Part shown: piece after piece, positions 29,051 to 48,300 of the stretch | How positions within the stretch are numbered: position 1 is the first letter of the stretch | Layout: every line of letters begins with the position of its first letter | From: Thalia democratica | Taxonomy: Eukaryota | Length of the DNA stretch: 64,000 bases | Direction: 5' to 3' | Assembly (NCBI GenBank): GCA_965202585.1 | Contig: OZ241826.1 | Span: forward strand, 43,710,001-43,774,000 | Translations under genes and position numbers: made by a program | The notes under the pieces: generated by a model | The model's input: only the letters and a program-made list of their open reading frames with translations | Told to the model about the DNA's origin: nothing | Database searches by the model: none

Positions 29051-32005
29051 TTGATTACGATTTAATGAGCAGTTTCGTTAAAAGCTTCGGCTTGTTGCTG
29101 TAAATTGCTATGAGATTTGAAGGAAAATTGCTAAACTTCCGTGTAAAAAGCGATTTGTTCTTCGTAAAATTGTTTCGTTTGCTCATCGCTTTTTAAATGC
29201 TTACAGTCAAATGGTGTAAGTTTGAGAATTGATAAAAGTTTCAAGTTAGTACCATGATCCTTTTTTTGAAATAAAATACCTCTTAGAAGATTGTTATAAC
29301 CCTTTGTTATTGGTATAAACTGTTTAAACAAAAAAACTAAGGTTTATTTAGAATTTTTATATCTTTTTCGTCTTAAAAAACATTGTTTAGAAGTAAATCA
29401 TTGAGCTTGAAGTCTTATTAAAAAAAAACAACAATTAAACACATTGCATTTATCAATATCTTAAATATTCAACATTAAAAAAAAAAAAAAATAGAAAATT
29501 TATAACTTTTAAATAACTTCATATGATTGAAAAAACAAAGCTAACATAAAGTATGCTAAGTTTTTACTACTTAAACTTAACATAAGCTCATAAAGTAATA
29601 AAGATTTCCAAAAACTACAATTAGGTTTTAAAGAGTTTCATACCTAAATTTATCATTTTGTCAGTTTTAATTGTATACTACCTAGTAAAGGTTAATTGTT
29701 TTAAATTAAACTCCAAAATTAATTATTATTTGCGTCAAAATAATTGTATTTTTAGCTTAAATAAAAGCTTAATATAAACAATACCTCTTGAACCTTTACT
29801 GATTATAAAAGAGACAAAAATATTTATATTAATTGATTTTTTTACAATCAAGTAAGTTTATATCTACAAAATACTTTTTTTTTAGTTTGAAAAATATTTT
29901 AGTTTAACAAGATTAAAAACTGAATGCTACCTACTTCCGATGATTCGTAAAAATATTTCGAAATAAAATCCAATTTCAGAAATGCTGATAGAGATAGCTA
30001 GTTTTGTTTCGATTGAAATAACTTTAAGTTTAATATTTTCGACAAAAATACTTTGTTCATATTTGTTTAAAATATTAGTTGTTCATTTTAAGTTTTCATA
30101 TGCTTATTTTATTTAAAAATTACGAAACAAGCTAACAAACTAAAATATAGATAAGACTAACATTCTAAATTATTTTAGTGTTTGTAGTATGTTTGGAAAA
30201 GTATAAACAAAACTGTTTTTAAGTATATTTAAAAGAGCTCAAGTCAAAACAAAATTACAAGAAAGTATTTACGGCTAAACAAACAATTAAAGCTTACTAA
30301 TATTCAAAAACTATTTATTTTTAATACTTTGTTTGAATTTTTTTTTAATAAAATATTCTATTTACAACAGAAAAAAAATTGCTTAAAGTAGTTTAGTTGA
30401 CTTAATTTTATACAAATAAAAAGCAAGGTAAAACTTTACAGGTTCAAATTAAAGTTTTAGTTAATATAATGTATTATTGATAAATGTTCGTATATTCAAA
30501 CTAGGTAAGTTAAAATAGCTATGTATTTAATTTTATCGCTTTAGCACATAGTTTACAAAAAAAAACTTTAATTTGTATGTTAAAAACTTTAAATTGTTTT
30601 ATTATAGTTAACTTCTTTTATTTTTAAAAATCAGGAAATAAAAAATGATTTAAGTACTTATGTTAGAGTTAGGTTGAATTGCTTTTTTAAACAACGTTTG
30701 TTAAATCCAGTAAAGTAAAAAAAATTATAAAATTTCTAAAAATTTAAATAATTAATATAGATAGTTAATTTTACAAATTACCTCAAAATTCAATTTAACA
30801 AATAAAATTTATTTTGAATAAAGCTTTTTTAATACTTAATAATTAACACAACTTACATCTAAAAAACAATCACAAAAATAACTTTAGAAAATTTGAAAAA
30901 AAAATCCTATGTACATTTTCTTCATAGGGTAGTAATAGAAGTAATTGAAAAATAATTTCGTTTGTTTAAGTGCTAATTTAAAGCCTTTTTACACCTTATG
31001 TAACATAAATAAACTAAATAGCGTTTAAAAAACCAATACTAAGTTACCTAACTTTTTGATGAGTCTAGATTTATGTTACTAAACTTAAAGTTACAACAAA
31101 AAATTAAAAAAAAGTATCTTATGCTTTTTATACTATGCTAAAATGTGTGCAGGAATTTATATTTATATCAAAAGCTTTTTTTTTTATATAAATTTAAAAA
31201 ATTTATGAAAAACTCAACTAGATAAATGTATGGTTGTTTATTGTTGTTCAGCTAATTAAAAAAAAGCCATAAGGAGATTTATTCATACTTACTGTGTGCT
31301 CATCTTCGTACTTTCATTTAAATTAAAAAAAAACCTTTTTGTATAAAAAAACATCAAACATACTTAAGTTGTGTTTTGAACAGATAAAAACTTAATTATT
31401 TTATTGTTAACTTAAAGTTCGATTTTTAACTAAATTTAAACAATTTCTTAATGCTTAATTTTAAAGTTTTACTACTTTCAAACCTAATTGTTAAAGGTTT
31501 TTGTTTTATTTTATGTTACGGAAAATTTTAAAATTATCTTCTTCACAAAAGTTTTAAAACAGTTCAACTTTACTATAAACTTTTGTTATTAAATTTGGTT
31601 AAAGATCAAAAGGTTTCTTCGCTTATAATATCTAAAAATTAATTATTTAAGCCAATATTATTTTTTACAAACACTGTTTAAGTTTTGGTATAATTTATGT
31701 TCATCTGTATAATAGTAAACCATTTAAAATAAAAGTAAGAAAACTGCTTTAATTCTTTTTTTAAACTAAACAAATTTGAGTACTATAAAATATGTAGTAT
31801 TTATAACAAAATAGTTTATGACAATCCTTTTATATTATGTTCTATAATTAAGACAACTTGGTAAATTTTTTATATAGAGGTCAATCAAAAGTCCAAATGA
31901 ACAGTACCTTAGCTTTACTTTATGATACAACATAACATATGATTTAGTAACTTCTTTTATTTTTAAAGATTGAGATAAAGCAATGAAAAATTAGTGTAAG
32001 CTGAT

Positions 32006-35000
32006 TCATATCTGGCAGGGGTTTGCCACACTTCCAGGCCATTCACAAACATTATAGTCCGGGTTCCAAATAGTTCCATCAACGCAAACAAACTCGTACT
32101 CAATACCTTAAAAATTTTTATCAGAACTAGTTTTATAAAAACATAACAACAATATTTTCATATTAAATATTAAATTTACCCCATACGCATCGGTAAACTT
32201 TGCAAGTTGCTGGATCTTGTACGATATCTTCGTGCAATCCTTCGCAAAGGCTTGATGATCTCACTATAAAAATTTTAATTTTAAAAGTAAAAACGAGTTT
32301 CGTTCTTCTAAGATATTTAACATAAGTGACCAGTAATTATACAATAGGTTATACAGGACACACAATTTCAAAAACACTAAATATATTTTCAGCAATTCTC
32401 ATCAGTAGAGTACAAAGTTAACCAGTAATAAGATTTTACTAACTTATATAGTAACCAAGGAATCAAGTAATCATAAAGTAATCAAGAGATTAATAAAATA
32501 AAAAATTAATTAGTAACAGTTAAAGTCAAGTAATTTCATTTACGTTTTAATTGAACTACAGTAAAACTAAACATAAACAAAATGAAAACAATCTTTATAA
32601 GATATTAAGAAAATAAAGAAACAGTGTAGTCAAAATCTTTTAGGTTACATAAAACAGGTTTCCTTAACAAAATACAAATGGCTTCTAATTTAATCAAATC
32701 GAAAACATTACTACAAGTTTTAATAGTTTTAAATCTACATATATTATAACTGTTTGCACAAGTTGGATTATTAACTAAATGTTCTGCAATAGATAATCGT
32801 TTAGATGCGTTTAAAACTTTGACTGGTATATCATCTTTTTTGTCTGCAAAGCAAAAATTCTCAACACTTTTTGGTACATGCAAACCCTGCTGTCTTGATT
32901 ACTTTATGATTACTTGATTACTTGGTTACTATATAAGTTTGTAAAATCTTATTACTGGTTAGCTTTGTACTCTACTGATGAGAATTGCTCGAAATATATT
33001 CAGTGTTTTTGAAATTATGTGTCTTTTTAGATATGTTTATTATAATTTGTTATAAATTGATTTGTATAAGAACTTTAAAACGTTTAGTTTTATTACAATG
33101 TCGTTTTAAACTAATAAAATCTACCTTATTTGTTTAAGTTTAACTTTAGTATATAACACCAAGAATAAGCTTACTTAAACGTGAAACTGTGTAGACATTC
33201 AAAACTCTAAATTTAAATAATAAATTAAACAAGTTTTACTTGAAAATGTTTCACATCCAGGAACATTTTCAGGGTAGTCACACATGTCCGTGGACGGATT
33301 AAAAACAAGGTTCGCAGAACAGTTGAATAGAACAGCATTTCCTAAAAATAAATTTCACCGAAGTTTAATTGTCAGTGTTAAACTACAAAAAATAACTACT
33401 TTAATAATATCAGTATTTGTACTATTCAACAGAAACAAGGTAATATACCTAAAACGTCGCATTCATAGAATTTGGAGCAGTCTTCGGGAACTGGTAGCAA
33501 ATTTCCAACTTGAATTTGACCATTTTCTCCGACACAAACTTCTACAAGAGCAGAAAAGAAGTTAAAAGGGCTTAGATGTTTTATGTTTATGTCTTTTTGC
33601 TTTTAACAATAATAAATACGTGGTGGACTGTTTTGTCTTTCAAGTTTTTTTACAGAATATTAAATTTCATGTATTATATGTTTAGAATTTTTTATAATAC
33701 CTAAACTTTATGCAACAATTTTTCTTTAGAAAGATGCTTGTTTTTCTGCACGCCAACTTAAACACTGTTCTAAATATTTAAAAAGTAATTACTATTGTTT
33801 TGTTTTTGTTTAATGCTTATTAGTTGCTTTTTAAAAGACCGCTAAAAGTAAAAAAAAAAGTCAGGAACAATTTATACTTTGTTTGTTATAGATGTATCAT
33901 ATAGCTGGTTCTACCTGGCGGGGTGATGAAGAGATCAAGGAGGGCGGCGTTTGAAGCTTCAGCGGCGTTTCCGCTCTCGTCGACTGCCCTCATCGCAAAC
34001 CCGATCCTTGAATATTAGAAAACTTTTTTGAGAATGGATTCACAGATTAGGTAATAAACTGTTACGATATATTGCAATACGAAATAGTTATTAACACTTG
34101 TTTCGAAAATGTTCACTATTCAGGTTGAAAAAAAAAATTTAGACGTGATTAGTTTTTAAAATACATAAAAAAAAAAACATGTTTAAACACCATTTACTAT
34201 TAGTATGAAACTTAATTCTTACTTTAAAACCCCGCTGTCTTTCGGAAGATCGTCCAAAACAACATTGAAAGATTCTTCATTGCCGCTTGATGCAGGGGAC
34301 TTGAGATCACCAGAGATCAGGTTGCTTGGCAAGACTTCGTTTTGTTTATCAAAATCCAATCGGAGACTTCTTGCGTCGCCGTATGTATAACGAAGCTCGT
34401 AACTAGAAGCTGTCAGATTAGTATAGTTCTAAAATTTTGTCATACATCTAAAAAGTAATTATTATTAATTAACTTTTTTTAAAGATACTTTAGTAAAAAT
34501 TTAAAAGGTCGTTGAAGTTAAACTTTTTCTAAAGCACCTTTCCCAACATCGTAGTCATCACCGGGAGCCGTGAACATCAGCTTGAAGCCTTTTGTGACGT
34601 CAAACACGTCGAGTTGCTCGGCTGTGAGATCAATCACGCTTGCAGGTGGAAGAATGTCTTTTGAACCGTCAATTTTAGGTCTGAAAAAAACTTTTTGCAT
34701 GTAAAAGTTCAAACTTAAGTTGAATAACTTATAAAGAAATTTATTTTGAAATATGTTTGTCCACTTCTTTCAAAAGTTTGTTTAGTTTTTTAACAGTTTA
34801 AACAATACCCAGTATATTCAAATCCTCCAAGTGATTGAGTTCTTTCAAATGATTCTAAAAATGCAGAATCCAGTCCATCTATGTCTTGTACGGTAGGTTT
34901 CGCGTTTTGGTTAAGCTTTAGCGTACCTGAAATAAATTAGTTTCAATCAGACTTTAATAAATTTATAAGTTTGTTAAAAAACACAAACCATCTTCTGAAA

Positions 35001-38000
35001 CGACTCCAAAGTTGTACGCTGCAGTTGAGTCCAAAGTTTTACTGATTGTTGAGTTGCCTATGCCAGTAACTTGAACCTATTTATTCAAGTATTTTTTTAT
35101 TAATATTAAACTTGTTTATTTTCTGTCTGTAAAAAACTCTACGAACAATTATAAACGTTTAAAATTTTTATACAATATTTAATACAAACGTTTTACAACA
35201 CCCTTTATTAAAAAGATAAGAAACCTTCATTGAATATCTTCCGGTGGCTTTGTATCCGAAGAAGTATGCTGAGTACACGCCATCTGATTTACGGGTATCA
35301 GGCGCTGTGAATATAATAAAATATAAAAGTTCCTTTATTTAGATTATATTAATATTTTATCTTACCTGCTCCTCGGTCAAGAAGCTGCACACATTCAGTA
35401 CTTCCATCTGGGAACGAAACAGTTGCTACTACATCGACGTTCAAGATAGGTTGGAACCCTTGCGTAACCTGTAAGCGTTTTTTAATAAAAAAGTGGTAAG
35501 AAAAACGCAGAAGTACTTTATTATTTCGTAGCTAACCTGAGCATACAAAGTGATAGGCGTAGTTGTGTCCATAGTCGAACTAGACATTCCTGCCTTCACA
35601 GAAATAGGCTCCACATTTGGATCGGACACTTGCGAAGACACGCTCGCAGTTACTGTGTTTTTGGAGGAAGAAGAAGCTGTGTAAGTCCATGTTCCTGCCT
35701 GCATCAAAAATCCTTGAAATTATTTGACTAAATATAGAAATTAAAAAATTGCTTTTGAACTTCGAGTCTTATACCTTTTTTTTTTATAGTCGGAATATAA
35801 AACTAAATAAGCTTAAACTTTAAAATAAAACCTTAATGTATCTTGTTTGAATAATTTAACGTACTTTAAAATTAAAAAAAAAAAAAGGTTTACCTTGGCT
35901 ATTCCGGGAATTTTAAATTTGATAGATCTGTAGGTAGGATCAACTTCAGCCATGAGAGTAGTATCACACTCTGGTGAATGAGGCACAAAGGAGCAGAACA
36001 TGTTGTCGTCAGGATCGTAGAGATCCACGTAGGGAGCATCTGAGTTTGTGTAGGAGAAACTAAACACCGTGTTGCTGCCGACGGTTGAGTCGACAGAAAC
36101 TGAACCGGTGTAGTCTTGGTCCTTTTTGACTACAAAATCTTCGCTCTTTAGCTGAAAAGTATTTGTTAAGCAGCTGTTAGTAGGGACAAAACTACTAAGA
36201 TAGTAAGACTGAATGATAGCAAACTATTTTGCTGTTTGTTTGTTTAAGAGAAGCAATTAAAAATTTTTACTTCAAAACTTTTTCCTGTATAATTTCCAGA
36301 GTTATCTTCAGATACTTTATCAAAAAATTCGGTAAGTTCTATCAAGGAGTTTGCGTATGTCCAAATTCCTTGGGTATCGTCCGTTAGTTTTATCATAAAA
36401 TCGTTTCCTTCTTCTACTCCAAAAAATACAGAGTGAAACACGATACCCTTGATGTAGAAAATATTTAACAAAGTGTACAAGTTGTGTTAAAAGTACTAAG
36501 TTGTAAGAAGATAGTTATTTAGCTCAAAATCATATGGTTTGGGTTTCTAATAAATTTTATTAAACATATAAAAAATAAACTCCTAACAATAATACTATTA
36601 TTTTAGATGTTTTTAGTGTTTTTTTAATTTATGTATTTTTATTTAAGCAACTACAAAAAAAAGCATATTAAATTAGTTTAGAATCTTACCGCTTCAATGA
36701 CATCTAAACTAGATTGTGGTGGCCAACTCCTTGTTTGCTTTCCATCTGTAAGACAGATGATTTGGGATCCTTCAGTATTTCCAGAAGCTTTAAGCATCTG
36801 TTAAAATAAAAAAATGGAAATTAAATGGCTTAATATATCAATACTGTTACAAAAAACTTTATTAGATAAAAAAGCAATCAAATTGTTTACTTCCACAGCT
36901 TTATCTACACCCAAGTCTATGTAAGTTTCGCAGCAGACAACATTTTTCGGAGCAGGTAAACTCGACGAGAGCTTGTCGCGGTCGTCTTGGGAGTTGATTT
37001 TCGTGAGTTCGCTGTCGACTTTCACCTTTTTGTTGAACTCAATGAGCCCGACTTCGGATCCGTTCGGAGCGTAGTTCTTGAAGAAGGCGTCGGCGGCCTG
37101 GAGCGCGTTGAACATCTTTGACGCATCTCCCTTGAGGTTCTACAGAAATGATAGACTGTGATTTAAAGTACAGCGTAAGTCAGTTCCCGGGCTAGTTCAA
37201 AAATGGTTTGTTACCAAAAATACAATTTGTAAACGAAAGTTTTTTGTAAATTTAGTTAAGAAAACCAAGAACAAGCAGTCCTATTTGAGATAAACACTGA
37301 TAAAAAAATAACTGATAAGTTACAAAAACAACTAAATTAAAAAAAAAAACATCATATTTCATGCTGTCCGAAGTGTCAACGACGAGCACAATTTTGTCGT
37401 ACGAGTAAGGCTGGACCACGTTGAAGTTCGGCTCGAGATCGGTTACGCTCGGGTGCGGCTTCAGCCCGTCAAAGTCCTCGCTGGAAGTAATCACGTCCCA
37501 CGCGCTTCTCTGGCTGCACAGCCTGTTGTGCTCGTTGGGCGCCTCGTAGTTGTGCAGGTTGGCCGGGTCGCTCTGGTCGTCGTGACAGAAGTGGACCACC
37601 TGGTTGAAATTTGTTTTTGTAGGACTTTTGTAAGTTTTTAAATTGTTAGTGGGTATCTAAATTGAGATAGCGTGTCAAAAAAACAAAACTGTAATTGTTT
37701 TAGGCTAATTAGGAACTAAAATGCTTTGTACCTTTAAAACATTTAATTACTTGATGCATATAATCATAACTTAAAATAAAAAAGCAACAGTTTAATTATT
37801 TTTAAATATAACTTGATACATGTAATAATCATTATAAAAATAGTTTAATTATTTTAAAGTATTATTGTATAAATAAAAACGGAAAAATTTATATATTTTT
37901 TACAACTTTTTTGTTAATAAACTAACGTTTTCAAGAAAATGATACGCCATCATAGACACTGTGACGCCATACTGGTCTTCGTTCGGAACAAACTGGCATT

Positions 38001-39246
38001 CTCCTTCGTAAGGAAAACCTGTTTGAGGGTTCAGTTCGCATGGGCTTGTTTGCAAGTTTCCATTCGCGTCAGTTTCGATGTGCACGAAATCCCCTTTCAG
38101 TGCAGCTGGGCATCTAAAAATCAAATATTATTATTATCAAATATTTTAGCCCTGTAAAAAGTTTTGATTTTCTTACTTTATTTTCTATTTTTTATTGTTA
38201 AACCTAAGAGCTTTAAGTGTATTTGTAAACATAATACGATCTTGTAAAGGAACCAACTTGTTGGCTTCAATTTTTTCAGTGACGGAATCGAAGTAGAACT
38301 CAGGATACCCATCTCCACCTGTTTCGTCGAAAACCCCCCATCTCAGATGGGCCCATTCATGAACCATCACTTTACCTTGGGTGGATGATTTGTAAGAGTT
38401 TTAAGTACATGGAAAAAAGTTTTAATTTTCAATTAAAAACTTCTTAAAACTTAATTTTACACAAACAAAGATATCTAAACAATGTGTTTAATATACTCGA
38501 TACTTAATTTAATTTAGATTACGACAAATTAAAAACTACCTTTAGGTCCCCAACTTGCAACGTGGTCGTCATTGACAACGTAATCTGGGGTGAGGTGGAT
38601 GTATTCCCCGTGAACCTGGCAACCTCCGAACTGAAGGGTGTAGGGCTCGTCACCATGACCTGGGTGCTCATCGGCAACCAATACGTCCGCCTTTTAATTA
38701 ATGTAAAATTTATAAACACAAGTATCTACGTTTTAATCAGCATATTTAGAAAACCAATATGAAATCATGAAAGAATTTTTATAAAATATATATGAACTTA
38801 CTTTGTCGTAGGAATACAGTCCTGATTTATCGTACGATCCCGAAGTCCAAGAGGTCGGAACTAGGATGGTTATGTCTTTGAAGTACGCGTGTTCTTTCGT
38901 GGCTACGTACAGAGACTTTGATGCGTCACTCCAAATTTGCTGCGGGAAAAATTTAAGTGACGCTAAAATTTCATGTGTATGTTAACAATTATATTCAAGT
39001 AATCATAGTAAATTGTTAAAACGTTTAAAGGATATACAACATATTTTAGTTTTTTGCTAAGTTTAACTTTTTTTTTAAACCAACTTTAAGTGAATCAACT
39101 ATTTTTGTGTCCTCCGGAACGTTTGGGTTTATCGCAATGACGATCCCCTCGTAACCATTGTCAACTATTTGAACGTTGTCATAGTTACAAAATGCTTTGT
39201 TAAAGCAAAGCGATGCTAAAACAAGAAGGATGAAAATTTTCTTCAT
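32006..39246 (-). CDS. CLCA: CLCA-family secreted protein (signal peptide, HExxH metalloprotease, VWA, beta-sheet/FnIII region) with two C-terminal CBM14 chitin-binding domains, ~1050 aa. Exons: 39246-39085, 38939-38802, 38690-38540, 38375-38258, 38113-37927, 37599-37351, 37139-36891, 36797-36690, 36447-36271, 36151-35894, 35698-35537, 35468-35366, 35304-35225, 35076-34989, 34926-34809, 34680-34538, 34409-34223, 34006-33915, 33541-33449, 33341-33240, (33186-33175), 32263-32180, 32106-32006
   Basis: NGYEGIVIAINPNVPED, DEPYT, VHEWAHLRWGVFDE, MIDAS VLVVDTSDS..T..LTDG, DGVYSAYF, PPASVIDL, FTAPGDDYD, FAMRAVDE and six-Cys peritrophin-A patterns. Every intron is GT-AG and phase-consistent. Confidence 0.92.
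32374..32411 (-). ncRNA. Degenerate minimal type I hammerhead ribozyme motif
   Basis: Minus strand reads actcta CTGATGA gaattgct GAAA atatat t tagtgt. The C normally pairing with G10.1 is absent. Confidence 0.5.
32969..33006 (+). ncRNA. Minimal type I hammerhead ribozyme motif
   Basis: actcta CTGATGA gaattgctc GAAA tata TT cagtgt: catalytic cores, a 2-bp stem II, a palindromic ATATAT stem III and an imperfect stem I. Such minimal HHRs are typical of Penelope-like element repeats. Confidence 0.65.
33175..33186 (-). other. Candidate 12-nt micro-exon of the CLCA gene (phase 1-1)
   Basis: ctacacag|TTTCACGTTTAA|gtaagc is frame-preserving and stop-free, with a 53-nt upstream intron. Confidence 0.45.
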
Positions 39247-39289
39247 GATTTCAGTGTTTGTGTATGAAAAAGGCAGTTGGCTGTTAAAC

Positions 39290-39341: not shown

Positions 39342-40029
39342 TTATTTTATAAATGAAATAAACATAGTAGTTTTGCTAATCATAATTTAAATTTACACAG
39401 AGAGCCAGGTATCACAATTCTCACGGCTAAACCTATTTAATTTTATTGAGATCAAGTTTATTTCTATTTACAAAATGTACTCGAGTGTTTAATTGTTTGC
39501 TCAATAGCTATAAAGTTGACTTTAGTTTTGTCGTTAGTTAATCCAATTGCAAATACAAGTGGCTGAAAAAGTTTATTTAAAGAAGCTTGACATTTAGAGA
39601 TAAAACACTAGAGTGATAATGCTTATTTTCTTGAAAAATAAAACTGCAATAGTCTTGTGGCTTTTTGTGCAAAGTTTATTAGGCGAACTAGAATGTTTTT
39701 TATTCATTTAATTCACCAAAATTACGTCCAATTCATTTTGAAAAAAAAAAAATTCCATGTGACCTATTTTTTACTATGTCGAGGGTAAGTTTAAAATTTT
39801 TCGTAGATTCAATTAAAAAACTTTAATTTTTCCTCTTTATTTCAATTCTGAGAATATCCAGTCTAAGTTTCAAAATTTGGTTTAGAAGGCCGGGTTAACA
39901 TGATCACTTCCATTTAAATTTTGTAAACATTGGCAGGCCGTATGTTACTAACCTAGAGACTAAACATTGCATTTGTGAGATTTAGCTTTTTATTGCCTTA
40001 ACATTTTATTGCTTGATAACTAGTATCTA

Positions 40030-43611: not shown

Positions 43612-44729
43612 AAATCATATGTATAGTTTTCTCAATAGGATAGTAACAGAATTAATTGAAGAACAACTTAGTTTGTTTAAATTCTAATTTAAAGCTGTTT
43701 ATATCTTAAGAATTATAAATAAACTAAATAGTGTTTTAAAAACCAAAATTAGATTATATAATTTTTTGACGGGGTTACATTTATTTTAGCAAACTTAGAG
43801 TTACAAAAATAAAATCTCATGCTTTTTATATTGTGCTAGAATGTGTGCAGGAATTCATATTTACATCAAAAGCTTTTTTTACTTATATAAATTTTAAAAC
43901 TTTATTTTGTTAACTAAGTGTGTTTTATACTAAATGCAGCAACTAAAGTTATGAAAAACCCAATTAAATAAATGTATGGTTTTTGTTGTTGTTTGTTTGA
44001 TTAAAAATTATACTTTTAGACTACAAGGAGATTTTTTATACTTACTGTTTGCTCATTTTCTTAAAATAATTAAAAAAACTTTTTGTCTAAAAAAAAATCA
44101 TTGTTACTTTAGTTGTGTTTTGAACATATAAAAAGTAAATTACTTAGTGTTATTTAAGGTTCGATATTTAACTAAATTTTAACAACTTTTTAATGCTGAG
44201 TTTGAAAGTGTTACTACTTTTAAGCCTAAATATTTTTTCTTTTATCTTATTACGAAAAGTTTTAAAATTGTTTTCTTTACAGAAGTTATAAAACATTTAA
44301 ACTATTTTTCTTTAAACTTTTGTTAATAAATTTGTTAAACAAAAAAAGATTTGTTCGTTTATAATATTTGAAAATAAAATACTTAAGCCCACAATTACAA
44401 ACATGATTAAAGTTTTGATATATTTTATGTTTGTCTGTTAAATAGTGAAGTATTTAAAGTCAAGGTAAGAAAATTACTTTAATTATTTTTCAAACTAAAT
44501 AAACAAGTACTACAAAATATGTAGTATATATGAAAAAATAGTTTATGACAAACTTTTTATTCTATTTTGTAAATAAGACAACTTTCTAAGTTTTTGATGT
44601 AAAGGTCAATTTAACATCAAATGAACAGCATCTTACTTTTACTTTAAAATACAACATAACATATGATTTAGTAATTTTTTTTATTTTTAAAGATTGCGAT
44701 AAGGTAATGAAAAATTAGTTGAAGCTGAC

Positions 44730-45230
44730 TCATATTTGACAGGGGTTAGCCACATTTTCAGGGTAGTCACAAACACAATAGTCCGGGTTCCAAATAAATC
44801 CGTCAGCGCAAACAAACTCGTGGTGCTCAGTATCTTAAAAATTTAATCAAAATTAGTTGTTTAAATAAAACAAAAAACTTTTATATCAAATATTAAATTT
44901 ACCCCCTATGCATCGGTAAACTTTGCAAGTTGCTGGGTCTTGTACCATTTGTAAGTTCTTTCCTTCGCAAAGGCTTGATGATCTCACTGTAAAAATTTTA
45001 CTTTTAAAAGGAAAAACGAATTTTGTTCTTTTAAGGTATGCTTAACACAACTTTTTAAAATTGATTTGTATAAAAGCTTTAAAACGTTTAGTTTTATCAC
45101 AATGTTGTTTTAAACTAAAACAAATCTACTGTATTTGTTAGGTTTAACTTTAGTATTTAATACCAAGAGTAAGCTAACCAAGACTAAAGCAAAGCGATGC
45201 TAAAACAAAAAGGATGCAAATATTCTTCAT
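44730..45230 (-). CDS. Secreted single-CBM14 chitin-binding mini-protein, 79 aa: MKNICILFVLASLCFSLVRSSSLCEGKNLQMVQDPATCKVYRCIGDTEHHEFVCADGFIWNPDYCVCDYPENVANPCQI. Exons: 45230-45179, 44986-44903, 44833-44730
   Basis: 240-nt spliced ORF with donors GTTAGC and GTAAAT, acceptors ttttacag and ttttaag, and phases 1-1. It has a hydrophobic signal peptide homologous to CLCA exon 1, six domain Cys, and a retained TATA/Inr and AATAAA (44685-44680). Confidence 0.75.
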
Positions 45231-45253
45231 GCTTCCACTGTTTGTGTAAAAAC

Positions 45254-45305
45254 AACTGAAACTATCCTTACGAATATTAACACCAATTTTTATATGAAGT
45301 TATCA
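45254..45305 (-). promoter_or_regulatory. Duplicated CLCA-type core promoter driving the mini-gene
   Basis: TATAAAA starts at 45294, TCAGTT is at 45259-45254 and TGATAA at 45305-45300. Confidence 0.5.
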
Positions 45306-48300
45306 TTGTATGACTATCTTTATTTTGTAACAGGTATCACAATTCTCACGGGTAATACTTATTTTTTTGAGATTAAGTTCATTTCTATTTACAAAATGAA
45401 CTTCAAGTGTTTAATTGTTTGCTCATTAGCTATAAAGTTTACTTTAGTTTTGTAGTTAATCCAATAGCAAATACAACTCGCGAAATTTGCTGAAAAAGTT
45501 TGTTTAAAGAAACTTGACATTTAGATATAAAACACTAATGTGATAATGCTTGTTTACTAAAAAAATAAAACTGCAACAATTTTTGTGACTTTTCGTGCAA
45601 AGTGTAAACAATGTAAGGTAGGATATTACCATATAAAAGTTTGTATTTTATTTTATTTCAAAGTTTTTTTCAAAATATTTAAAAGTGTTCAAAAAAAACA
45701 GAAAATTTTAGTATTACTTGCTAAGCTACTTTGTTTGTGTTATTTCTAAAAATCATATAAATTTTTATACTTTTAAAGTTTAATTCACACAAATTTTGAT
45801 AATTATTTAAAACAATTCTATTTTGAAGCTTTAAGAACTTTAAAGTTGCATTTAATAACTTAGCTTTCAAGTTAGTTTCATGTTGTGTTAAGAATCTCGT
45901 ACTTAATAAAACAAATAATTTAGAAATAATAAAAATAAGACTAAACACGTAAAAAAAGTTCTTTAAAGGGTATACAAAGGCTTAAATGTATATTTTCAAA
46001 TTTAAACTAATATATTTAAGAAAAAAGTTACCTAAACTATAAAAAAAATGTAAACAGTTATTGTTATTTTTAATATCTGATAACCGGAGATAATGCTAAA
46101 AATTAAAAAAAACAAAACGGCTTATTATAGTTTCAAATTATATCATATGCATCAACTAGAAACTAAAAGGGTTATTATAAATTATTTTAATAAAAACTTT
46201 TAAAATAATTTTCATATGAAGTTATAAAAAAGGTTTTTCTTTAAAAAATTTTAGTTACAAAGTACAGGTTTCGTTAATTTAAAACGTATGCAGCACTTAA
46301 CTAGTACACATTTTGTATGTCTTCTTATAGTTCAAGTTGTTTTATTTTTTTAAAACTAATTTTAATAACGCAAACATTGCATGCCTTCATAAGTTATTTT
46401 TAAATAAGTCTTCATCTTATAGTAATAGAATACCAAAATAACATAACCTATGACACTTTCTGTACACCAGGTGCCTGATTTACAAGTAGAGTAAAACGAA
46501 AGTTAGTTTTTATTATTAAGTTCAAGATATATTAAAATAAAAAAAACTTTTAAAAGGTTCACGAAAATAAGCTATAAGTTAAAGTTTTGTTTTTTATAAA
46601 CTCTAAAAAACTTGATAAAGGTTGTTTAATTAGGTGTCCTTTTACAAAACGCTTTAGAAAAAAAGCTTTAACAAGCAAATTCAAAATAAAAAAACATAAA
46701 GATAAATACAAAATTTTAAACTATACTTAATTTTTTTTTTTCTAATTTGTTAGTTTTGAATTAATGAAAAGCTGTAATTAACAAATTTCGCATTTTTTAA
46801 AACCTAAAAAGTATAATAAATCGTTTCAAACTATCTTACAACAGAACTTAATACATGTGATCACAAAAATAAACAATGATTAAAAAAAAACTATTTAATC
46901 ATCAAATTCTTACCAAAATATATATCAAAAAATATTTTTTTTGTCAACTAACAAGAAAATATTAATCAGTACTAAAAATTTTGTGCTATTTAATTTTTTG
47001 AAATACAATTGTTAATCTTCAACTACTTATGTAACCTTAATCTAGTTTAAATATGTTATGGTACGATTAAAATCATAATTTTTTTTGCTTTATAATGTAA
47101 ACTAAATCTTTTTATTTGTAGTTATTTGCCAGTCAAAGTAGTACTATATCAAATAAATTGAAAAACTGCTTTAGAAACATTTTTGTACAGTCTCTTTCTT
47201 TTTTCAGCAAACAAAAAATCTCCATTAAGATTTTTTGGTGTAAGTAAACCATTAGTAAAAAAAAATTTTAAATGCTTATAAAATACTTACTTTTCAAAGG
47301 CCAGTAATACACAAAAGATTTAGTAGACTTCCACAAAGTTAAAAGTTTTATCATTTAGGCTGTGGAACTTCTTGATAACATAAATAAACTCTTTTAAACC
47401 CTTATAAAATAAAAGTTTAATTAGTAAATCTGTAGTTAGATTTTACTACCATATCAATGTAGGTTCAAGTTGTAGAGATTTTTATTTTAAAACAAAACAT
47501 GAACACTTTAACTTTGAACAGAAGCATTGAAACATGAACACTGGAAACTTTTATCAGAAGTTTTTAACACAAAAAAGAAATTAATTCTCAAATATAAGTC
47601 AAAGGACCTGGTGTAGAGAAAGGTTTTGTATTAAAAGCTTTCAAAGGACCTTCAAAAGTGTTTGCAGAGATACGATTTAAAAAACGTTGTTTAAACTTAG
47701 GTTTAGTATATTTTTGTTAGTAGAATTGGATCGCTAGACCAGGGAATCTGCTTAGAAGAGGGAAAATTCTATCTCAGTTATCTGTTTCCTCGAAAGGTTC
47801 AAAATAAGTTTAGAAAAAACATTATTTTAAACTAGAGATGGAAAACGTTTTTAGACCGACTGGCTAGACGTGGAGGAATTTAATCCTTGGAGATTTTACT
47901 TAATTCACGAAAATTACTCAATTGTCCACTACATTTTGACGATTACTAATTTTATGCGACCTTTTTTTTTATTATATCTAGTATAAGATTTTAATCTTCC
48001 GTAAATTTTATTTGAGAATTTTTATTTGTTTACTTCATTTCAACTTCCAAAATTTCTAGTATAAGCTTCAAAATTTAGCCTAGAAGATCGGATTACAATA
48101 CTTGCGGACTGCAGTTTTACTTTTCGCGACCCGTACGTTGCCCACCGCTATTATAAACATTGTTATAGTAGCGCATTTAGTCAATTTTAGCTTTTTATAC
48201 TATAAATACTTTAGTGCATGATAAATAGTAGTATCATAACCAGTAGTATAACTAGTAACTAAGTAGTACCTATCGCATACAAAAACTAAGATTTGAAAAT

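Follow-up and report, generated by a model that had tools for sequence, protein, structure and literature searches.

A gene on the minus strand of a 64,000-nt stretch of Thalia democratica OZ241826.1 (the window; coordinates given without a prefix are positions within it) was found to encode a CLCA protein with a VWA domain, the body of which is followed by two chitin-binding CBM14 domains. Spliced mRNA bears out this fusion. With a probability of about 75 %, its product is considered here a secreted, self-cleaving zinc metalloprotease of CLCA type, which would be tethered by its CBM14 domains to host chitin, most probably in the barrier membrane of the gut. A preliminary description, made from the sequence alone, had announced such a fusion at 32006-39246 and implied that its architecture was new. 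The fusion was confirmed by the 22-exon frame, Pfam matches and RNA joints; the implied novelty did not hold, RefSeq and UniProt already containing the same architecture for Ciona and Clavelina. The architecture is thus already catalogued and was also recorded in a chitinous mucosal barrier, its functional link not being spelled out. The Thalia gene is a further, pelagic-tunicate member of the known tunicate CLCA-CBM14 subfamily and not a new type of protein.

Splicing and composition of the chitin-binding tail

Transcripts were taken from contigs of three marine metatranscriptome runs (one study, two samples) and compared over 31500-37450, a DNA run serving as control. The joint linking the CLCA body to the first CBM14 exon (33541|33915) was seen in all three RNA runs, joint 32263|33240 in two and joint 32106|32180 in one. 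Six more upstream joints, including 34680|34809, 34409|34538 and 34006|34223, were found in the joint table or in contig pieces. Ten joints of the gene model were observed directly in RNA contigs and joints were present at every exon boundary tested. They displayed CT..AC ends on the plus strand, that is GT..AG on the strand of the gene, and none of them was present in the DNA run. A single 918-nt RNA contig spans exon 20, through exons 19, 18, 17 and 16, to exon 15; record 2 of contig X1 displays exons 19 and 20 spliced together (intron 33342-33448 removed), and RNA depth was zero in intron 18 (bin 33689-33887). The spliced joints and the 918-nt contig establish that the CBM14 exons are part of the CLCA mRNA. 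Comparison of the RNA alleles with the window listed 31 exonic differences, of which 20 were synonymous, as expected under purifying selection, and 11 were not.

The frame had been proposed to run through phase-1 exons beyond the FnIII-like exon, and this is what was found: exon 18 ends at 33915 (CCAG|gtagaa), exon 19 starts at 33541 (ttgtag|AAGTT) and the intron between them is of phase 1, as are all of the last four introns of the gene. Both CBM14 domains are interrupted by an intron at the same internal position, after the glycine following the third cysteine. This shared position and phase fit a duplication of a two-exon module.

The two complete six-cysteine peritrophin-A domains of the preliminary description were recovered with the Pfam model CBM_14 (PF01607, cut-off 22.1 bits). 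Once spliced, domain 1 scored 51.8 bits (E 8.8e-14) and domain 2 scored 34.8 bits (E 1.8e-8), with six cysteines in each. The exon-level matches for domain 1 span profile positions 7-22 and 26-53; exon 21 by itself gave no CBM14 match, the spliced domain being needed for detection. CBM14 domains typically display six cysteines, with aromatic residues after C2, in xFNP and in C(D/E)(Y/W)P. The cysteine spacings are 18-5-10-12-8 in domain 1 and 13-4-9-12-9 in domain 2, with FY, VFNP and DYP as the corresponding aromatic motifs of the former and VY, IWNP and EWP as those of the latter. The tail of the homologue matched CBM14 domains of solved chitinases, chitotriosidase and tachycitin. By homology, the CBM14 pair is predicted to bind chitin.

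Gene model and protease body

The gene lies in AT-rich DNA of animal type with short introns. Enumeration of splice sites joined 22 stop-free segments into a single open frame, with canonical GT..AG sites throughout, and alignment of the 1049-residue model with the 1045-residue homologue P0157 left no gaps at any exon junction. For exon 7, acceptor 37130 was dropped in favor of 37139, which restored an NLK tripeptide matching NL(N/K)G of the closest homologues; acceptor 37139 also fits an RNA contig piece extending to 37141. RNA contig depth was present in bin 31898-32096 and zero in bin 31699-31897, a stop of depth within ~100 nt of the stop codon, where the polyadenylation signal sits. Features of the gene are collected in Table 1.

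Table 1. Positions of the exons, domains and key residues of the Thalia CLCA-CBM14 gene in the window
Feature	Position	Strand	Basis or remark
Whole coding region	39246 (ATG) to 32006 (last stop-codon base)	minus	22 exons, 1049 aa (amino acids) + stop
Exons 1-6	39246-39085, 38939-38802, 38690-38540, 38375-38258, 38113-37927, 37599-37351	minus	splice-site enumeration and open frame
Exons 7-12	37139-36891, 36797-36690, 36447-36271, 36151-35894, 35698-35537, 35468-35366	minus	
Exons 13-18	35304-35225, 35076-34989, 34926-34809, 34680-34538, 34409-34223, 34006-33915	minus	
Exons 19-22	33541-33449, 33341-33240, 32263-32180, 32106-32006	minus	
Signal peptide, aa 1-20	39187..39246	minus	sole strongly hydrophobic 19-residue window (Kyte-Doolittle 1.7); aligns with homologue N-termini
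CLCA N-terminal metallohydrolase and cysteine-rich domain, exons 1-6	37351..39246	minus	Pfam PF08434
Active site HEWAH then FD: H156, E157, H160, D167	38326..38361	minus	alignment with vertebrate CLCA1
Met-turn candidate M244/M245	37948..37953	minus	aligns with S-I/L-M column of vertebrate and tunicate CLCAs
VWA domain, end of exon 6 to exon 9	36271..37377	minus	residue alignment; VWA match in full-length homologues
Metal-ion-dependent adhesion site (MIDAS) residues D327, S329, S331; T407; D436	37363-37377; 36924-36926; 36744-36746	minus	aligned with vertebrate CLCA1
Beta-sheet-rich and inhibitory domains, exons 10-15	34809..36151	minus	full-length alignment to CLCAs
Predicted autocleavage motif DST|AAYNFG	35005..35031	minus	aligns with vertebrate CLCA1 ..K|ALY.PG.
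FnIII-like domain, exons 16-18	33915..34680	minus	alignment; ends ..FITPP immediately before first CBM14
CBM14 domain 1, C926-C984, exons 19 and 20	33240..33541	minus	split by phase-1 intron 33342-33448
CBM14 domain 2, C995-C1047, and stop, exons 21 and 22	32006..32263	minus	split by phase-1 intron 32107-32179
Polyadenylation signal AATAAA	31956..31961	minus	~45 nt past stop; sequence

Members of the CLCA family are metzincin-like proteases that cleave themselves. Exons 1-6 gave successive PF08434 matches, collinear with the profile and together covering its positions 1-263 of 266; taken singly, five of these exons exceeded the cut-off of 25.6 bits. The active-site residues H156, E157, H160 and D167, the last being the third zinc ligand, seven residues beyond the HExxH motif, carry identical numbers in human CLCA1, for which the roles of the catalytic residues were defined and the Met-turn was assigned to Met238 (10.1101/2025.10.18.683246). 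MIDAS residues D327, S329, S331, T407 and D436, which make up the DxSxS...T...D pattern, were all kept, and alignment with vertebrate CLCA1 bears out the earlier statement that both HEWAH and the MIDAS are intact. Pfam matches of VWA and VWA_2 to exon 7 were weak and below threshold; homologues aligning throughout carry a full VWA domain. Exons 9-18 matched no Pfam family in an exon-level scan, the body from the beta-rich to the FnIII-like domain not being covered by any Pfam model. The full-length alignment to vertebrate and tunicate CLCAs nevertheless reaches about residue 920. Names of the beta-rich and inhibitory domains follow the CLCA1 cryo-EM preprint 10.1101/2025.10.18.683246, in which autocleavage of the human protein was placed at Gly694 (P1). 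In the Thalia protein, the aligned motif predicts a cut between T732 and A733. Kyte-Doolittle hydropathy of the whole protein displayed a peak solely at the N-terminal signal peptide and no transmembrane segment, as had been stated before.

Intron 20 harbors a very high-copy repeat (32296-33091), for which summed contig depth in the DNA run amounted to 4.5e4 to 1.2e5, compared to ~100 in the flanks. Diverged copies of the repeat occur in the RNA runs too. Its 97-aa open reading frame (32608-32898, minus strand) displayed no Pfam match. The locus recurs ~12.7 kb upstream, at 43627-45583, as a second, gutted copy. The segment 30916-33174, comprising the 3' flank, the exon 22/21 region and part of intron 20, is repeated at 43627-45178 with 76-88 % identity, and the promoter and exon 1 region (39201-39271 and 39557-39656) at 45185-45255 and 45484-45583. 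A tblastn search with residues 982-1046 of a preliminary 1046-aa model matched 44733-44999. The copy at 43627-45583 is a deletion derivative of the CLCA gene.

Relatives in tunicates and origin of the tail

A phmmer search with exon 6 against 1.84 billion representative proteins retrieved CLCA proteins, none of which exceeded 61 % identity; with a best match at this level, the Thalia protein itself is absent from the searched library. CBM14-like tails were displayed by three of the best 150 phmmer matches and Pfam confirmed the combination of CLCA, VWA and CBM_14 in these. A word-index search with a Ciona protein as query uncovered the same architecture in Ciona intestinalis (XP_078489083.1, its isoform XP_078489082.1, XP_002127942.1 and XP_026691563.1), in Clavelina lepadiformis (XP_076809993.1 / CAK8695927.1, the latter automatically named 'chitinase' in UniProt) and in two unnamed environmental proteins. 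Among the 120 matches listed, PF01607 was not encountered on any vertebrate, hemichordate, echinoderm or mollusc CLCA.

The closest full-length match found was the marine metatranscriptome protein P0157 (JGI 3300018744, contig Ga0193247_1002248, 1045 aa), which is 58 % identical to the Thalia protein over 1042 residues, both CBM14 domains included, and displays identical cysteine spacing in both of them. It is encoded on a transcript contig of 3276 nt which is intron-less and therefore represents a mature mRNA. In contrast to these likenesses, P0157 is not the orthologue of the window gene. It is orthologous (~87 % identity) to a second Thalia CLCA gene at 62.06 Mb (C5:62057500-62067499), which also has two CBM14 domains, with an identical exon layout and four CBM14 half-exons, and which is ~46-80 % identical to the window protein per exon. 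At least four CLCA loci were found in the 802-Mb assembly: besides these two genes, a locus at 16.95 Mb (C7:16946200-16956199) is without the tail and matches tail-less environmental proteins, and a fourth is divergent.

Identity to the ascidian members was 38-41 %. Ciona proteins of the Ci-CLCA1/2 type share with the Thalia protein the signal peptide, CLCA_N, VWA, a beta-rich and FnIII-like body and two C-terminal CBM14 domains. They likewise lack a transmembrane segment, their CBM14 domains start right after ..F(L/I)xPP, and they belong to the same tunicate subclade. They differ by a full-length identity of only 38 % and by a longer linker between the CBM14 domains, of about 27-35 residues in Ciona versus 10 in Thalia. 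The Clavelina protein XP_076809993.1 ('calcium-activated chloride channel regulator 3A-1-like') is of the same architecture and clade, with 40 % identity over 1058 aligned columns; its linker between the CBM14 domains is longer and rich in Pro and Ser.

A maximum-likelihood tree was calculated for 31 CLCAs by a quick search without bootstraps, after removal of columns filled in less than half of the rows, which included the CBM14 tails; its root depends on one long mollusc branch. Tunicate CLCAs formed one clade in this tree (SH-like approximate likelihood ratio test, SH-aLRT, 99), and within it every CBM14-bearing CLCA fell into a single ten-member subclade (SH-aLRT 99). Three environmental CLCAs without CBM14 (P0160, P0162 and P0163) were nested inside this subclade. 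The topology fits one gain of the tail followed by one loss. P0160 displays a short cysteine-containing tail directly after the FnIII-like domain, and P0162 and P0163 an unrelated tail of ~65 residues. In every CBM14-bearing member, no more than a few residues separate the start of the first CBM14 from ..F(L/I)xPP, with which the FnIII-like domain closes; those tunicate paralogues that do not belong to the subclade have hydrophobic or transmembrane tails. This common junction, together with the tails of the sister proteins, indicates that the CBM14 pair occupies the position of a membrane anchor.

Some observations concern a related species. Its protein P0269 has 931 aa and its frame ends before the CBM14 tail (contigs L007:2793-2830 and L008:2793-2830), because of 7 A versus 6 A in the CCCCCCAAAAAA run just before the first CBM14 (compare L001:2720-2760); this was seen in two contigs from one sample. 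A tail-less splice isoform was ruled out for P0269, the difference being one extra A in the A-run and not alternative splicing. The extra A may reflect either a true frameshift allele or an error in the homopolymer. In L007:3122-3421, an insert of ~300 nt is retained at the position of intron 21, within the second CBM14. This position indicates that the intron 21 site is common to the orthologue of the C5 copy in the related species.

Proposed tether and substrate, and alternative readings

According to Nakashima et al. 2018 (PMC6109156), the membrane lining the gut of Ciona consists of a matrix in which chitin nanofibres are embedded. Present in this matrix are VCBP-C, the CBM14 of which binds chitin beads, and a gel-forming mucin bearing a chitin-binding domain; diffraction identified the fibres of the gut membrane as chitin and those of the tunicate tunic as cellulose (PMC6109156). 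Supplementary Table 1 of the same study, a proteome of this chitinous membrane obtained by liquid chromatography-tandem mass spectrometry (LC-MS/MS), lists, with an entry of 2 each under 'Number of chitin-binding domain', two CLCAs: Ci-CLCA1 (KH.C9.782) with 686 peptides and Ci-CLCA2 (KH.C9.291) with 183 peptides. Both are absent from the main text, where the word 'chloride' does not occur. A full-text literature search retrieved no main-text treatment of CLCAs with chitin-binding domains, including in Ciona, ascidians or tunicates, and a survey of CLCA family architectures from 2013 names neither chitin nor Ciona (PMC3650047). Ci-CLCA1 and Ci-CLCA2 probably correspond to RefSeq proteins XP_078489083.1 and XP_002127942.1, which are 75 % identical and have two CBM14 domains each.

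Other proteins of this membrane are built on the same principle. The secreted proteins VCBP-C, Ci-GFM1 (a gel-forming mucin) and a GH18 chitinase, all present in the Ciona membrane proteome (PMC6109156), combine a functional module with one or more C-terminal CBM14 domains tethering it to gut chitin (PMC6109156; PMC4757023). Their modules are unrelated to CLCA, being Ig-V domains, mucin D-assemblies and a GH18 domain, respectively. The protease body resembles that of vertebrate CLCA1, a metalloprotease of the mucus of intestine and airways that is secreted and cleaves itself (background in PMC6085540, PMC6851300 and 10.1101/2025.10.18.683246). The body shared by the two, which extends from the metallohydrolase through the FnIII-like domain, is 34-35 % identical. 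The zinc ligands, the Met-turn and the MIDAS are common to both, as is the motif A-x-Y-x-x-G at the position where CLCA1 is cut. In contrast, CBM14 domains were lacking from the vertebrate CLCAs among the 120 matches listed: CLCA1 ends after its FnIII-like domain and other vertebrate paralogues have a membrane-spanning helix (10.1101/2025.10.18.683246).

The genome also holds genes that bear on a source of endogenous chitin. A chitin-synthase-like gene at C5:49104000-49113999 (L005: 6604-6780, 6946-7122 and 7998-8300, minus strand) gave one PF03142 match above cut-off, and its exons carry the motifs CSPGCFSMFR and EYSAASD..FNEFYNQRRR, which we take to be signatures of metazoan chitin synthases. 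At least 31 CBM14-coding stretches were counted in the genome. More than 20 of them are clustered at C2:59325712-59336416, with 12 in one 803-aa open frame, a cluster that looks like a multi-domain peritrophin-like gene. The chitin-synthase-like gene and the many CBM14 genes make an endogenous chitin matrix plausible. The CLCA tree marks the source animal as probably a tunicate, and the occurrence of the transcripts among plankton points to a pelagic one. An exon-by-exon search of the genome for tunicate hallmarks gave no match to cellulose synthase (PF03552) or GH6 (PF01341), a negative without weight given the exon-by-exon mode and a GH6 control that was likewise without match.

Taken together, the protein would be secreted and, in keeping with vertebrate CLCAs, would undergo self-cleavage near T732|A733, in a loop of its inhibitory domain. 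Through the CBM14 pair on the C-terminal fragment, the complex would then be fastened to fibrils of endogenous chitin. The likeliest place for this is the gut barrier membrane of chitin and gel-forming mucin, where the tethered protease may trim components of the matrix or mucins. Chitin binding, autocleavage, a location in the gut of Thalia and mucin as a substrate are all predicted by analogy with these relatives. Anchoring to a chitin matrix linked to a mucus barrier had already been put forward in the preliminary description, and homology to Ci-CLCA1 and Ci-CLCA2 of the Ciona gut membrane lends it support.

Several points weigh against this reading. Four of them concern residues. Tyr169 of human CLCA1, retained in Ciona, is replaced by Thr in the Thalia protein; CCET stands in place of the GGGT stretch before the MIDAS threonine; the predicted P1 residue is Thr, versus Gly in human CLCA1 or a basic residue in most other CLCAs; and in the second CBM14 4 residues separate C2 from C3, versus 5 in ascidian copies such as those of Ciona, a spacing of 4 being common to the closest homologue P0157. 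Furthermore, KH models and RefSeq proteins agree solely in species, family and number of chitin-binding domains, exon-level Pfam scores of the chitin-synthase-like locus are weak and below threshold, and the RNA is known only from whole-plankton metatranscriptomes, as assembled contigs of one study and two samples.

The same protein might be anchored to an extracellular structure other than the gut barrier membrane, for example the net of mucus used for feeding, the lining of the oesophagus, or the tunic or cuticle. Transcripts from plankton metatranscriptomes, which carry no tissue information, leave room for this, and it retains a minor but appreciable chance; however, the sole direct localisation for the subfamily is the chitinous gut membrane of Ciona, and fibres are chitin in that membrane and cellulose in the tunic (PMC6109156). 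It is unlikely that the CBM14 pair binds foreign chitin, from diatoms, fungi or crustacean debris, which would make the protein an effector of digestion or immunity that attaches to prey or microbes. Such a role would agree with the nearest solved CBM14 matches, which sit in chitinases, and with VCBP-C, whose CBM14 domains reportedly recognise self and non-self chitin (PMC6109156), but a host scaffold accounts at least equally well for the detection of the Ciona relatives in a proteome of washed host membrane.

A mainly non-proteolytic protein, in which the VWA domain regulates a chloride channel of TMEM16 type or another surface partner and the tail limits diffusion, appears quite improbable. 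The intact MIDAS residues would suit it, as would the potentiation of TMEM16A and TMEM16B by vertebrate CLCA1 and CLCA4 described in PMC11231702; yet none of the zinc ligands has been lost, the catalytic Glu and the Met-turn are likewise kept, the listed differences from RNA alleles are mostly synonymous, and a protein bound to the matrix would be badly placed for a channel of the apical membrane. The reading with by far the least to recommend it, already largely refuted, assigns the CBM14 exons to a separate gene, an outcome named in the preliminary description as one that would refute it, or lets the main mRNA read through the 33915 donor to a stop at 33889, the fusion being minor or an artefact. 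An in-frame stop does lie eight codons beyond this donor, assembled contigs leave space for a rare read-through isoform, and in one sample of the related species a 1-nt frameshift in an A-run ends the frame just before the CBM14 domains. Against this stand the 33541|33915 joint in all three RNA runs, the lack of RNA depth in intron 18, the one contig running from exon 20 to exon 15, and a fused design conserved in ascidians and in the second genome copy.

Among the components of mammalian intestinal mucus that are not mucins, CLCA1 is a major one, and it processes MUC2. A CLCA with its own chitin anchor fits between this CLCA1-MUC2 mucus and the chitin-mucin barrier of Ciona. Tentatively, and at well below even odds, CBM14-tailed CLCAs may be resident processing proteases of the tunicate gut barrier, acting on the gel-forming mucin that bears chitin-binding domains. 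This idea of a re-anchored CLCA-mucin partnership was not discussed in the literature searched, where the Ciona proteins figure only in a supplementary table. If true, the partnership of CLCA and mucin known from the mammalian colon would already have been present in the chordate stem lineage, and would have been re-anchored in tunicates from the cell membrane to a chitin scaffold, the transmembrane tail being swapped for chitin-binding domains. To the subfamily, the Thalia gene adds a pelagic-tunicate member with good splice evidence, two genome copies, one neighbouring deletion derivative, and a probable history of one tail gain and one later loss. Its product is a testable candidate for an enzyme remodelling the tunicate barrier.

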